DNA of 64,000 bases, taken from assembly GCF_002113885.1 (NCBI RefSeq), contig NW_018406268.1, forward strand, positions 1,575 through 65,574. The letters run 5' to 3'. Below are positions 10,156 through 55,018 of this stretch, one piece after another (the first letter of the stretch is position 1; each line of letters opens with the position of its first letter). Position numbers and translations under genes: made by a program. The DNA comes from Mizuhopecten yessoensis (Eukaryota). The notes below the pieces were generated by a model, which made no database searches, was not told the DNA's origin, and was given only the letters and a program-made list of their open reading frames with translations.

Positions 10156-10192
10156 TTCTGGGAACCAGCACGCTAGTTGTAGTTTCATTTTC
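10156..10192. promoter_or_regulatory. GAS (TTCTGGGAA, 10156-10164) + ISRE (AGTTTCATTTTC, 10181-10192) pair upstream of gene B
   Basis: Exact consensus matches. Both are kept at 31734-31770; GAS only at 51090-51098. Confidence 0.35.
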
Positions 10193-11601: not shown

Positions 11602-11827
11602 NNNNNNNNNNNNNNNNNNNNNNNNNNNNNNNNNNNNNNNNNNNNNNNNNNNNNNNNNNNNNNNNNNNNNNNNNNNNNNNNNNNNNNNNNNNNNNNNNNN
11701 NNNNNNNNNNNNNNNNNNNNNNNNNNNNNNNNNNNNNNNNNNNNNNNNNNNNNNNNNNNNNNNNNNNNNNNNNNNNNNNNNNNNNNNNNNNNNNNNNNNN
11801 NNNNNNNNNNNNNNNNNNNNNNNNNNN
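11602..11827. other. Assembly gap (226 N)
   Basis: N run; the paralogous interval 33206-33333 contains a (TG)n(AG)n microsatellite. Confidence 0.99.
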
Positions 11828-12981: not shown

Positions 12982-15673
12982 TTACTCCGTAATTACTTCA
13001 GTATGATCATAAACAGAGCTTAAATCATTGAGGGATTTACCAATCATTCTTGGCATCGTATTGTCCAGGAGTTGTCGATCCTCTATAACAATCGCAGCGA
13101 TTTCGGATTTTGTTGATTTCTGGAAAGCCCAAAGACGCCTGTTTCCGTCGATAACACTCATTGCTGTTTCGTCTTGCCAAACAACGATGGGCGGTATATT
13201 TCGACATTCCAGATTTTCAGAAACCAGTTCATTGACGAGAGTCCTTACGTTAACTCCTGAATGATCTCCTGAAGAAAAGGTCATTGGAATAACATCTTTG
13301 GTGAATTTAACACTCATCGGGTCAATGTGCGTAACATCCGGGGCCTTGTGCCAGTAGCCTCCTGGTTCCGCGTCGTCTTTTATCCCGACAGAAACACCAC
13401 GATTTTCTGACGATCTTTTCATTGAGTCGATATAAGAGACCTCTTGGAAAGAAATCTCTTTACATCTGCCTGGAAGAAAGGAACGAATTTATGTTATATG
13501 ATGAAATATTCGTGATAGTCATAGCGGTAACATATATACTATATACGGGGGAACATCCAAGAAGGTTAATAGACCTGGACAGATTGAAAAAAACTAGGGT
13601 AGAAATATTAACAACTAACGTAAATATATATCAAACCTTAGTTTGGTTTCCATCTGGTTGTGTTTCGATTTTAGCAATATTGTAATGTTGTTTTACTTTA
13701 ATGTAATGAAAACTACAAACAGCATTCGGACAGCAAAGTATATAAAACGATTCTACTGGGTATTCGTCCGCTTCAATATCCCACCCTGACCATTTGAAAA
13801 GAATTTTCTTGTGATAGAGGATGGATGTATTTTCGAATGAAAGGGTCATACTATTAACCTTGCCTCTGGTACTAGAGTCAATATAAGCATACACAAATGT
13901 GAGTGACCTATATGGTAATTAAACTGCATGAGCTATACAGAGGATACTTAATGGTTTCCCATTGAAAAAACATATATATCTCACTAGTATGGCAGAATAT
14001 CGATATTTTTCTTTAGGGAAAAGTACAAGTGAAAATATCGGTAATGTTTATCCTACCATAGGAGTGAAACCATTACATTTTCTGTGTTTTATTTATTTAA
14101 TATTACTTACAACAACGAAAATGTCACTGCATCAAAACATTTGGGCTTATAATAAAAATCTTAAGTGCCATAAAGTAATGATGTCTTGCTTGATAACAAG
14201 TCTGAGCGTCATTTCTGATTGGTTACCCAGTGAAATTTTACAGGTATCTTCTATTTTTGATCAGAATTTCTTACATTAATAATATAGATTACGAAGGCAA
14301 ATGTATACATTAACATACGTAGAAAAGATGTCAACAGAAAATCTGCGACTTTGAATGGGGTGAATAGAAAGTGGCGTTCTGATTGGTCAATTTCAAAAGT
14401 GACATAGTCATCCATCCAAAACAACTGTATAATAATCTTGGGGGAGACGGTGGTTACTGTGGCCCATTTTAATTTAGCCTATGTTATCTGTTCAAATTTA
14501 TGTGTAAATATAACATTTGAAAGAGAATTTCATAAAATAATAGCAAAATGACAAACACATCGGTATTTAAAGAATTAATAGAACCTTTTCTGTCAGGATA
14601 TTGTGCAGCTGAAAGTACTGCTCCCTTGGGGGAAGTTCGGACAGATATTCTGGGATAGATTCGGCATATAAATGACGTCATTAAGTACGCAACGTCAGAT
14701 TTTCCTGACACTGTCAGGACTTTCCACGTGTTGCCATTGCCATTGCCAAATCTACCCCAATATCATTAGCCGAACATGACCCATATTCATATTTAGACAA
14801 ATTATTTTATTACAGGAAAAAAAAGCTAAGGTATATATTATAATTAATGTACCATCTTGAGAAGTTGTCTGTGTGGTACATTTATAACATTACATAAATA
14901 TTTTTTGAGGGGGTATTTTAAATATTTCGGAGTAATTCGGGTTATCAAAAGTTTACAAAGCTAGAGAGAGGTCAGATCATAATGATTTTTCTACCATCCT
15001 AAAGCTAACTTTTCCCCTTTTATTGAGTTTTCCACACTATTGTATTTTTCATGTGAATGTTCCGTCTAGTCAATGGTCTGCTAAGATCCTAAAAATTGTG
15101 AATATATGCTCAAGAAACAAAATATCAGAGGTAGTCGAACTTAGCCTGGGGCCGCACTCTGTCCAGTCTTTCCTACCAGTAATATTGCAATATTTGTGTT
15201 TATAGTTTATAGTTTATGCATATTCATTATTTTAAACATTCTCTAAACAACAATAGCTGAAACAAGTCATTTGTACGAATATAATCTCCCTTTCCCCGTG
15301 TGTGCTTGATGTCGCAAACATATCAACGATTTACCATCACAAATCGCAAAGGTAAGAACATACCTAGTCTTTCCAAGTGTCTGAAAATCCAAAGACGACG
15401 GTTGTCAGCGGTAATCCAACGAGTCTTCTTCCCGCCTACCAATATATCCCCATCTGTCTCCTCGTCTTCCTCCTGTTTTAAACTTATCTCCGGAAGTGAT
15501 GTCATTGACAGTCGACCCTCCATTATATCGTCTAGGGTATCGCCAATGGTCATGTGTCCGTGTCCAGACCGCCGCCGAAAACGATGGTAGACTACCTTCT
15601 GACTAAAACAGATGTCAGACGGTCTTAATTTTGACGGTTTCGTATTTTCTGACAAAGACAATGATACCTCCAT
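12982..15673 (-). CDS. Gene C1: tandem double ParB/Srx-like domain protein, 265 aa; join(15673..15364,13469..12982)
   Basis: Donor CTAG|GTATGT and acceptor ctttcttccag|GC (phase 1) give RHLERLG|RCKEISFQEV, matching the unspliced paralogs (LEELGQCTEI). Domain 1 motif TADNRRLWIF; domain 2 motif VIDGNRRLWAF. Confidence 0.9.
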
Positions 15674-15722
15674 TATGATCGTTGGCTCTAGACCTGTGGG
15701 CAGTTACCTAACACAATAACTG

Positions 15723-15816
15723 TATTTATACTGTATTATCACGAGTCGGCAAACGATTTCAGAAAGTATCTTTTTCGAAACCCAATAAAGAATTTACAGA
15801 ATCGAAACCGAAACTG
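15723..15816 (-). promoter_or_regulatory. C1 promoter: TATAAATA (15730-15723) and ISRE/IRF-E GAAACCGAAACTG (15804-15816)
   Basis: Matches GAAANNGAAACT ~130-145 bp upstream of the ATG; conserved in all three units. Confidence 0.7.
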
Positions 15817-17094
15817 AACTTAAGTTAACAGAAATTAATGTCGATCTTGTTTAAAGATAGATGGATGCTTCTCCTCTGTTTACATTTCGATACGAAAATG
15901 GTCGAGTCATATGTATTATATAATAAAATATATATTTTTTTAGTTTCCTGGGCTATCCCAGAGAATATAGCGACGGACAAAAACTGTTGTCGAAGTTTTG
16001 CCTGTAATCGCATTTGTGGTAGTATATTGTGATACCTGATTGTAGGTTTGATAAAATGTTTTTCGATTTTCTCGAAAATGCACTTATTGTTAATTGGTCA
16101 TCTGGTAATTAACTAAAATGTAAGTTGTAAAAGTCTATATTTAGTAACATCACCACAAACGCTTACATCAAAGCGTGTGTAACAACATGTGACGTCTGCT
16201 AGGTGGAACAAAGCTGGCAGTACTCCACTACACATATGTGACTCGCAATAAATAAGATCCGGTGGGGTAAAAAAATTGCGTAATTTTGAAAAAAAATGAA
16301 ATACACATTTTCTCCAATAATTCTCAAAATGGAAAGTAGCAATCTGTTCATAACAGATTATTTCGTAATGACATGCACCCCCCCCCCCCCCCNCCCCCTT
16401 ATTTCTTTAAATATGTAAAAGTTTTAATTGATCTATCGAGTAAATGTTTCAAAAATTTAATTTAAAAAACAATGGTTCGAGGGATTTCATAACCAACATC
16501 TGCAAACACGTAGCCAATGTCATTGATAGGACACATAAACATAAGTTGTGTGTGATGGCAATATAACGGTGAGGCCGTCTGGAAAAGTCTAGCGAGGAAG
16601 TCGTAAATAACACGTGTGCTGCGCAGGACGTAATGCGATCAATACATGTGGCAAGCAAGAGTGAGGCATGACTGTACAACGTCGTTATCCTAAGTAAACA
16701 CGTAACATTGATGATTAATAAAATATGTGTATGAGTCTTTATTGCAAAATACCATTTTATATGTCATAAATTTGTGTATAATTTCGAACATAATTACGGT
16801 ACGATATGGCGGAATTAGTAACTTATTGATTGGATTGTTTATTTAAGTGGAGATATTGATGCTAGTAATCTTATAATTTGTTACGAAAGAAGTCGAAACA
16901 GAATGAAAGTGAAGATTAATTTCACAACGTTATTTTACCCACAGTTTTGCGTTCGATGTGGTATTATTCAGGAAGAATGTAAGAGTTATGCCCCTTCCTC
17001 TACACATTGCTTTATTTTGAACAGTTCAGAATAAAAATTTAACGATTTAATGTTAAGCATTCTTATTGGTCGGGATGGTGTTCAACAGTGGGTT

Positions 17095-17210: not shown

Positions 17211-19427
17211 TTACTGAAGCTCAGAGCAAATTATTACCTCACAAGAAAAGATTGTTCGTCTGCGAAGTAAATATTCGTCTGCTAGCTAGATTCAGGTGAT
17301 GATCACACAGAAAGAACTTTTTTTCTATTCTAGAAAGCCGCCATCAAAGCATTGCAGAGAACGCCATCACAAATACCTGAAAAAACACAGCCTACCTCAT
17401 ATAGTAATGGTAAGGACCAAGGATCTATTGAAAACAGCGAAAGTGTGACATATCTACCTATTAAAAGGCAATGAACAGGAATCTTGATAACTTTGTGGTA
17501 TTGTTAAATCAAACACAGCTCAAAAGATCCCTGTTTAGAGAACACATGTAACAAAATTAAAGCCTGACCCCAAAACCGGGTCGTGAACTAATAACATAAT
17601 TTTTGTTCGTTCATTCCTTGGTAAAAGTAACGATTTGGCGTATCAAAGGTAGTGTTGTGTTTGCATGCGAAACAAAAAAGGAAGAATAGGGAAAGAGGTA
17701 CATTTGGGAGCCATCCCTGTTCTTTAAAAAAAAAAAAGGAAAAAGAGTGTTTCAGTTTACCTTCATATGGGGGTATATGACCTCCTAAATTGACTTTAAA
17801 CCCTCAAAATGTTAGAGGCTTGCTATAGAAAGAGGAAAGAATTTGGTAATTACGTCTGATTTTACCACAAGATTTTGTGTCTCGTAAAATAAACTGGAGA
17901 AAGAATAAAAGTATAAAAGCAGTAAGTTTATATGTCTGTCCTACACAGTGGTATAGTCCATTGATCATTTGATAAAATTCTATCTCAATGCACAAATTTA
18001 TAAAATAACGAAGGAAGATTTAATATTTCTTTATTCGATAAAAAGGTATGAACATATATAGTTTACATATTTTGGTCCATCAAATGTAAGTTCCTTATAA
18101 CGATTGGGAACATTGAATTATCATCCTCGTCATTTGTATCCAATGTGGTTGTTAAAATTAACACATTCGTTTGTCAAAACTTTTACTCATTACTATTTGT
18201 ACTTATTTGTCTTTACGTTTATATTAAATAAAGTGACACTCTTATGTGTACGTAGGTTTTCGATATGCAGGTGTAATTACATACAGGTGTGGATTACGGA
18301 TTACGAATGTCTCCGGGGCGGTATATTTGCTGCAATATCGTATAAGATGCTTACCAGTAACATTGCACAAAGACCCCGATTGAATTACACAAATTGTGGT
18401 AAAATTTGTTAGTAATTCATGCTCAATCTTCATTAACAAACATTTAATGATCTCATTTGTGTAATTAAAATATATGTTACACACTAAACACAAAGGTAGC
18501 CATTTTTTACAAGCTGTTTAATGATTAATATAATTACCACAAGCACTGTTGTAAAGTGTAACACTAAATATTTTTGACACATTATTCAATTATTACTGTT
18601 TCACTCCTTGTATCAACACTGTCGTGTACCTGTGTACGGCAACTGTTGATTTGTGTCTTTTTTTGTTTACACTTCGACTCATTTCAGTAAATCAACAGAG
18701 CATATTGGTAATGTGTTGTTTTCCTCGACTAATTGTTATTTTGTCTATGAAATAATCTGATAAAAGAAGAGTAAATAATGACTATTTCGAATTTTTGTTT
18801 AGTTTATATATTTATAAGTACAGAAACAGCAAATTTGTACTTACTAATTACAGATATCAGTCGAAGCGTGAATATGAAACGAGACAAAACAACCGTGGCC
18901 GTACACAGCTATACGACAGTGATCAAATGATCATGCCCAACAAGATAAGCCACCACTGCAGGTCATCCTCATCGTTACTCACATCAGCACATGCCTTGAG
19001 GCTAGGGTCATATCAGCTGAAATTAGCCGTTGGTTATTAATAAGTTCTCGTCGGAAATCAAATACACTAGGAAAATGTTGTTGAACTTGTTGAGAGAACC
19101 AGGAGAAGAGCCATGCTTGTGTATTTTCTGCAAGTTACTGCTGTTGGGCCACGATATTGAAGGAGTGACTGAAAGGTGGAGTGATAGTGTAAAAAGAATT
19201 TGCCCAGGTAGCGAACGATCTGGAAAAGGGGAATTTACTCTTGCTGGTCCATATCCTCGGCTATAACAAATCAAAATATTATGAAAGTATCGTATGTAAA
19301 CCATTGCACAGACAAAGCATAAAACAAAATAATGTAAAATACCATGCAAGCTTTAGGTGTATTCATATTTGCTGCTGTTCGATAAAACTAAATAATATGA
19401 AAGGAACATTCTTAAAGGCGCTATCAA

Positions 19428-37386: not shown

Positions 37387-37516
37387 TATGATAGATGGCT
37401 CTAGATATGTGGGCAGTTACCTAACAAAATAACTGTATTTATAATGTATTATCACGAGTCGGCAAACGATTTCAGAAAGTATCTTTTTCGAAACCCAATA
37501 TAGAATTTACAGAATC

Positions 37517-37532
37517 GAAACTGAAACTGAAA
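37517..37532. promoter_or_regulatory. C2 ISRE GAAACTGAAACTGAAA
   Basis: Three GAAA cores at 6-bp spacing, same offset as in C1. Confidence 0.7.
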
Positions 37533-54886: not shown

Positions 54887-55018
54887 AACAATAGATGGCT
54901 CTAGATCTGTGGGCAGTTACCTAACACACTATTGAATTATTTACTGTATTATCACGTCTAGGCAAACGCTTTCAGGAAGTCTTTATTTTTCGAAACCGAA
55001 TATAGAATTTACAGAATC

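Follow-up and report, generated by a model that had tools for sequence, protein, structure and literature searches.

The question raised by this locus is whether the GAAA-repeat element that stands above three copies of one scallop gene is a working IRF-binding site of its promoter, or a word carried along when the locus was duplicated. The window (the whole stretch of DNA analysed, 64,000 nucleotides of Mizuhopecten yessoensis) is a tandem triplication with a unit of ~20 kb, the units being 85-98% identical, and each unit holds three minus-strand genes (A, B and C) belonging to one family. Sites of the form GAAA-NN-GAAACTGAA occur three times in the window, all on the + strand and one per gene C copy. 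The positions used below are:

1008, 19914 and 41818, minus strand: ATGs of gene A
7850, 28729 and 47630, minus strand: ATGs of gene B
15673 (C1), 37386 (C2) and 54886 (C3), minus strand: ATGs of gene C
15804, written on the + strand: C1 site, GAAACCGAAACTGAAC, spacer CC
37517, written on the + strand: C2 site, GAAACTGAAACTGAAA, spacer CT
55019, written on the + strand: C3 site, GAAAGCGAAACTGAAA, spacer GC

An earlier note on this DNA had placed the sites at these three positions, and they were read there directly from the sequence; its observation that the spacer differs in every copy while the cores are fixed was also borne out in all three, the GAAA cores being identical and the spacers alone differing (CC, CT, GC). 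Given the minus-strand ATGs, each of the three copies has its site 131-148 bp above the ATG (~130-148 bp had been proposed), and in C1 the minus-strand TATAAATA (15730-15723) lies 74 bp below the site, in agreement with the ~75 bp to a TATA box given before. The 600 bp above the ATGs of genes A and B were scanned and contain no such site, so that inside the unit the element is specific to gene C. Counting both strands, GAAANNGAAACT occurs five times in the 64-kb window; the two remaining matches, on the minus strand at 10192 and 31770, are copies of one another, and unit 3 has no counterpart. As a real site, the minus-strand GAAAATGAAACT at these two positions was rejected and attributed to chance, because it lies 2.3 kb from gene B and is gone in unit 3. 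A transposon or repeat origin of the gene C promoter was ruled out, since the genome (987,588,634 bases in 82,659 contigs) contains only three copies of it. Runs of N are present in the window at 11602-11827 and 16393.

The gene C copies correspond to LOC110451200 (C1) and, for the two others, to LOC110451201 and LOC110451198. The C1 product is a database protein of 265 aa (P0001, 'uncharacterized protein LOC110451200 [Mizuhopecten yessoensis]'); exons 1 and 2 were translated separately and each was compared with P0001, which is also the source of the full-length protein. The structure of C1 is as follows:

15364..15673, minus strand: C1 coding exon 1, with the ATG at 15673 and the first ParB/Srx-like domain, 100% identical to P0001 residues 1-103
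13470..15363, minus strand: C1 intron, GT..AG, supported by RNA contig joints
12982..13469, minus strand: C1 coding exon 2, running to the stop codon, with the second ParB/Srx-like domain, 100% match to P0001

In runs X3 and X4 the RNA contigs span the joint 13468/15363 (the cut shifted by +1), giving a two-exon gene whose 3'UTR continues to about 12600. Variant letters in the RNA contigs suggest that more than one gene C copy is expressed. Contig depth over gene C was 241 in X3 and 30-80 in X4, and among the raw reads none was found in X21 (~12 million read) and one in X24 (~11 million read); such uneven expression between runs fits an inducible or tissue-restricted gene. Some of the contig letters of run X4 resemble C2 or C3. 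The literature search returned no paper mentioning LOC110451198, LOC110451200 or LOC110451201 and no induction data for them.

As judged from structure prediction, the gene C product has a ParB/sulfiredoxin fold with an arginine-rich nucleotide-binding box. The Pfam ParB_N family (PF02195) scores 13.5-14.8 bits, below its gathering cut-off of 26.3, and a PDB search with the gene C sequence profile gave no match; the AlphaFold2 model (pLDDT 81, pTM 0.78) was matched by Foldseek to ParB/Noc N-domains and sulfiredoxin (E 2e-5, probability 1.0), the ESM Atlas neighbours agree with this assignment, and the motif DNRRLW is invariant across 31 homologues. Members of the family, none of them characterised, occur throughout the molluscs (362 clusters at 50% identity); a search for literature joining ParB to bivalve antiviral work found nothing relevant. 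P0034 of Mactra antiquata, also a member of the family, is a fusion with an HSP70-12A-like ATPase; bivalves have a greatly expanded set of HSPA12 genes.

The sites belong to a longer IRF-type element, present in the three copies as follows:

15797..15819, minus strand: C1 IRF-type element, + strand CAGAATC-GAAA-CC-GAAA-CT-GAAC
37510..37532, minus strand: C2 IRF-type element, CAGAATC-GAAA-CT-GAAA-CT-GAAA
55012..55034, minus strand: C3 IRF-type element, CAGAATC-GAAA-GC-GAAA-CT-GAAA

In gene orientation the C1 element reads (G)TTCAG-TTTC-GG-TTTC-GATTCTG and comprises three units of the type AANNGAAA, the IRF recognition consensus (PMC7819612); the third unit is completed by the kept AATC 5' flank (AA-TC-GAAA). 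The IRF residues that contact GAAA are conserved in invertebrates (PMC7819612). The organisation that defines an ISRE/IRF-E, namely at least two direct GAAA repeats with a 2-nt spacer (GAAANNGAAA/GAAANNGAAACT), each within AANNGAAA, was found in C1-C3 and in the Pecten and Argopecten orthologues; the Ylistrum element keeps two AANNGAAA cores and has lost GAAANNGAAA.

The fixed cores and variable spacers had been taken as expected under selection on an IRF site. Among the paralogues this did not hold: in the three-way alignment two of the 13 columns of the 13-mer are variable (15%), against 18% for the promoter 15674-15900, and three of the 25 columns of the extended 25-mer vary, so within-genome conservation was rejected as a sign of selection, the motif varying as much as its flanks. 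The CC to CT spacer change precedes a G and is therefore a CpG transition, and since C1-C3 are recent duplicates, their agreement does not amount to three independent observations. By these sequence comparisons, paralogues as recent as these three are no proof of constraint, and within the genome the motif is conserved no better than its flanks. The promoters are 93% identical between C1 and C2, and C3 is ~85% identical to both. Over the proximal promoter (15674-15900) the ~85% identity of C3 to C1/C2 compares with ~74-75% in the intron (15140-15363) and farther upstream (15901-16380), which suggests that the whole proximal promoter, beyond the ISRE alone, may be under constraint or gene conversion.

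A functionless origin would account for these paralogue data, a chance AT-rich word having been retained in three copies through the recent duplication of the 20-kb unit: the units are 85-98% identical, the motif varies like the surrounding promoter, and one of the spacer changes is C-to-T at a CpG. The comparison that bears on it is the one between genera. Orthologues were taken from Pecten maximus (P0003, L026), Argopecten irradians (P0002/P0004, L027/L028) and Ylistrum balloti (P0155, L031); their proteins are 61-68% identical to P0001, and every locus carries the element in unchanged orientation, 133-168 bp above the ATG:

M. yessoensis C1: TTTCGGTTTCGATTCTG, 140 bp upstream of the ATG, gene orientation
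P. maximus: TTTCGCTTTCGATTCTG, 146 bp upstream of the ATG, gene orientation
A. irradians gene 1: TTTCGGTTTCGATTCTG, 133 bp upstream of the ATG, gene orientation
A. irradians gene 2: TTTCACTTTCGTTTTC, 163 and 157 bp upstream of the ATG, gene orientation
Y. balloti: TTTCAGTTTTGGTTTCAATTCT, one core changed (TTTT vs TTTC), about 170 bp upstream of the ATG, gene orientation

When the promoters were aligned between genera, the remainder outside the conserved blocks was unalignable. The 17-mer TTTCNNTTTCGATTCTG is conserved in Pecten and Argopecten and occurs a single time in each 21-27 kb locus, and an 11-mer, TTTCGATTCTG, is common to three genera. Among 5000 sets of the three 300-bp upstream regions simulated with a first-order Markov model, 0.06% contained a 10-mer common to the three and none (0/5000) an 11-mer; the only other 8-mer common to three genera is TATAAATA. 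Across genera the spacers read, in gene orientation, GG, AG, GC, GC, GG and AC/GT with the cores constant (the GC spacer being common to C3 and P. maximus), and constant cores with varying spacers are what AANNGAAA recognition predicts (PMC7819612). Within the genome the cores are no more constrained than their flanks; across four genera they are (0/5000 simulations), and the selection argument of the earlier note stands between genera and falls among the paralogues. Since four genera keep the element with its orientation and position while the rest of their promoters does not align, and since the simulations gave no shared 11-mer, we regard a functionless word as very improbable; the protein identity of 61-68% likewise speaks against recent horizontal copying of the orthologous promoters. 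The constraint is not absolute, since in Ylistrum one core is TTTT and the TTTCTGAAAT block and the TATA box are altered. The more distant homologues of Mya and Tegillarca, whose gene models are uncertain, showed no site upstream. Enrichment of ISREs above ~19 distant paralogues was considered and rejected, only scattered sites being present, 260-520 bp upstream of the start of the matched domain, a distance measured from that domain and not from a gene start.

The element is one of several conserved blocks of the promoter, which in the three copies are:

15756..15766, minus strand: second conserved block of C1, CTTTCTGAAAT in gene orientation, 35 bp above the TATA box
37469-37479, minus strand: second block, C2 copy
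54969-54979, minus strand: second block, C3 copy, altered to CTTCCTGAAAG
15723..15730, minus strand: TATA box of C1, TATAAATA
37436-37443, minus strand: TATA box, C2 copy
near 54934-54943, minus strand: TATA equivalent of C3, degraded, GTAAATAATT replacing GTATAAATAC

The TTTCTGAAAT block is present in four genera, 92-112 bp above the ATG, with 97-112 bp in the orthologous loci L026, L027, L028 and L031. From this block to the TATA box is 22-35 bp; the TATA box TATAAATA itself lies 57-89 bp above the ATG in three genera, Ylistrum having only TATATT there. A weaker TTAGGTAAC-like block is found at the expected start site, and the order element, TTTCTGAAAT, TATA and TTAGGTAAC is kept. The TTTCTGAAAT block matches TKNNGNAAK, a C/EBP-type pattern. 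In Argopecten a TTCTGAAA-like word, similar to TTTCTGAAAT, abuts the ISRE. With the TATA box and the second block altered and the ISRE intact, the C3 promoter may be the weaker one.

The same region bears on the position of the transcript start. Were transcription to begin far upstream, the motif would lie in a 5'UTR or first intron, or in a divergent + strand transcript, and the low-depth contigs of run X4 at 15902-16155 could be read in this way. These pieces are short and loose-ended on both sides (16012, 16053), without a joint to exon 1; the TATAAATA box is conserved at its distance above the ATG in three genera (TATATT in Ylistrum); the + strand upstream has no apparent ORF or gene; and RNA contigs are absent over 15668-15900. 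We therefore consider it improbable that the element is transcribed. The Logan contigs end at 15606 and 15667 and as such cannot show transcript starts, and the absence of contigs over 15668-15900 agrees with a TSS placed shortly below the TATA box.

Support from outside the locus comes from viperin, for which the scallop gene has GAAACCGAAAGTGAAACTG ~100 bp above the first in-frame ATG (L033, G000:C2205:9599-12823, reverse strand ~1165-1185), the only GAAANNGAAA in its 3.2-kb locus. Viperin was the single positive-control gene, so that among other antiviral genes of the species the use of the same element was seen in viperin alone; its first coding exon was located, the gene being split over several contigs in the assembly. 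The element type is that of gene C, whereas its orientation to the gene is the opposite. In the ~280 kb of DNA retrieved, the triple unit GAAANNGAAANNGAA was found only in the gene C promoters, in the viperin promoter and in one cluster at another family locus. The presence of bivalve IRFs, which the earlier note had mentioned, was confirmed in this genome, where three contigs carry, at four places, exons that score above the cut-off for the IRF DNA-binding domain (PF00605), at least four such domains being encoded. ISRE binding is reported for CfIRF1/2 of scallop and CgIRF1 of oyster (PMC13524488), and activation of a human ISRE reporter for CgIRF2/8 (PMC5557890).

Comparison with known systems places the element close to vertebrate and mollusc IRF targets. 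The claim that the C1 version equals the core of the ISG15 ISRE proved correct, the 15-mer GAAACCGAAACTGAA being contained in the human ISG15 ISRE probe (PMC3149226, PMC9907019), which serves as an IRF1/ISGF3 probe (PMC3149226, PMC9907019). Besides this identical 15-mer, C1 shares with the human ISG15 ISRE (GGGAAACCGAAACTGAA) the direct GAAA repeats, the 2-nt spacers, the GAAACT 3' half and the proximal place above a TATA box. In contrast, the vertebrate ISRE is defined by binding of ISGF3 (STAT1-STAT2-IRF9) after interferon and the gene C element is known from its sequence, and the 5' flank is AATC in gene C and GG(G/A) in vertebrates. The IRF-E/PRDI-type sites of IRF1/IRF2 (tandem AANNGAAA, AAGTGA hexamer repeats) resemble the 2-3 AANNGAAA units of gene C with their 6-bp spacing, and the orthologue in A. 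irradians gene 2 (Airr_2) reads GAAAACGAAAGTGAAAGT. Known mollusc IRF targets (the CgIFNLP promoter bound by CgIRF1/CgIRF8, and human ISRE reporters with CgIRF2/8 and CfIRF1/2) share with gene C the phylum and the trans-factors (PMC13524488, PMC5557890); they are, however, heterologous reporters or one cytokine-like gene, whereas the gene C element is native, is defined by cross-genus conservation and belongs to an uncharacterised effector-like gene.

On the cross-genus footprint, the element type of viperin, the IRF genes of the genome and the published binding of mollusc IRFs to ISRE, we consider that the element is probably a functional proximal-promoter IRF-binding site of gene C (ISRE/IRF-E type, with 2-3 tandem AANNGAAA units), at a probability of roughly 0.7. 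A constrained cis element could nevertheless be bound by something else or serve another purpose: a PRDM1/Blimp-1-like repressor, a STAT-type or unlisted factor on the extended CAGAATCGAAA/TTCTGAAA, or IRFs acting in constitutive or tissue-specific expression. Conservation does run past the canonical ISRE into GATTCTG, and the related TTTCTGAAAT block is conserved too; the uneven expression between runs could mean tissue specificity and not induction, and the IRFs of oyster have a further role in haemocyte proliferation (PMC13524488). Against this, the GATTCTG extension completes the third AANNGAAA unit (AA-TC-GAAA), Airr_2 swaps the extension for a perfect GAAAGTGAAAGT of IRF-E/PRDI type, and viperin, the best conserved antiviral effector, has the same element type. 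The M. yessoensis cores (CCGAAACTG) are unlike the Blimp-1 core, which is AGTGAAAGT. The TTTCTGAAAT block was also rejected as a STAT/GAS site, its TTC-N1-GAA spacing falling outside the GAS range of TTCN2-4GAA (PMC7819612). Another factor or purpose is thus, in our view, unlikely.

Under the preferred reading, that of an IRF-binding site, scallop IRF1/2/8-like factors would be activated or induced by nucleic-acid sensing and would occupy the GAAA repeats, some 80 bp above the conserved TATA box; together with a second factor on the TTTCTGAAAT block, they would drive transcription from near 15700. IRF occupancy, the TSS position and the inducibility of gene C by virus or dsRNA are what we infer. 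Gene C as an interferon-stimulated-gene analogue, as the earlier note proposed, is plausible from the sequence, and control by IRFs directly (IRF-E type) is a more cautious and more defensible description than 'interferon-stimulated' in the ISGF3 sense. More tentatively, and with odds somewhat short of even, gene C and its scallop orthologues may be an invertebrate-specific IRF-driven antiviral effector (tandem ParB/sulfiredoxin fold) without a vertebrate ISG counterpart, whose promoter grammar, with GAAA repeats in tandem some 80 bp over a TATA box, would from the bilaterian ancestor onwards have stayed interchangeable with the human ISG15 ISRE. If true, the disputed 'interferon-like' response of bivalves would gain a native readout defined by sequence; in these animals a true interferon-like transcriptional programme is debated, and the evidence consists mostly of mollusc IRFs acting on human ISRE reporters. 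A native footprinted element, of a type common with scallop viperin, is a concrete reporter and EMSA substrate, and the lineage-specific ParB/Srx-fold family is nominated as a source of candidate IRF-controlled effectors in aquaculture species with herpesvirus mortalities.

Further observations concern the relatives of gene C. In a Pecten maximus paralogue (L026 18806-18840, ATG at 18911) a palindromic CRE-like TGACGTCA is followed 7 bp on by GAAACCGAAACT, which lies 85 bp above the ATG in the orientation opposite to that of the gene C site. The second gene C orthologue of Argopecten has, inside its annotated intron, an ORF for a hAT-type transposase (Dimer_Tnp_hAT, L028 12071-13347). Another locus (L014 2093-2170, G000:C1434) has two ~56 bp tandem repeats, each with a triple TTTC unit (CACTTTCATTTTCACTTTCACC, GATTTCATTTTCTCTTTCACC); they directly follow the single-domain ORF of a different family member and precede a Ser-rich ORF, and they could be an intronic or downstream cluster of IRF sites.
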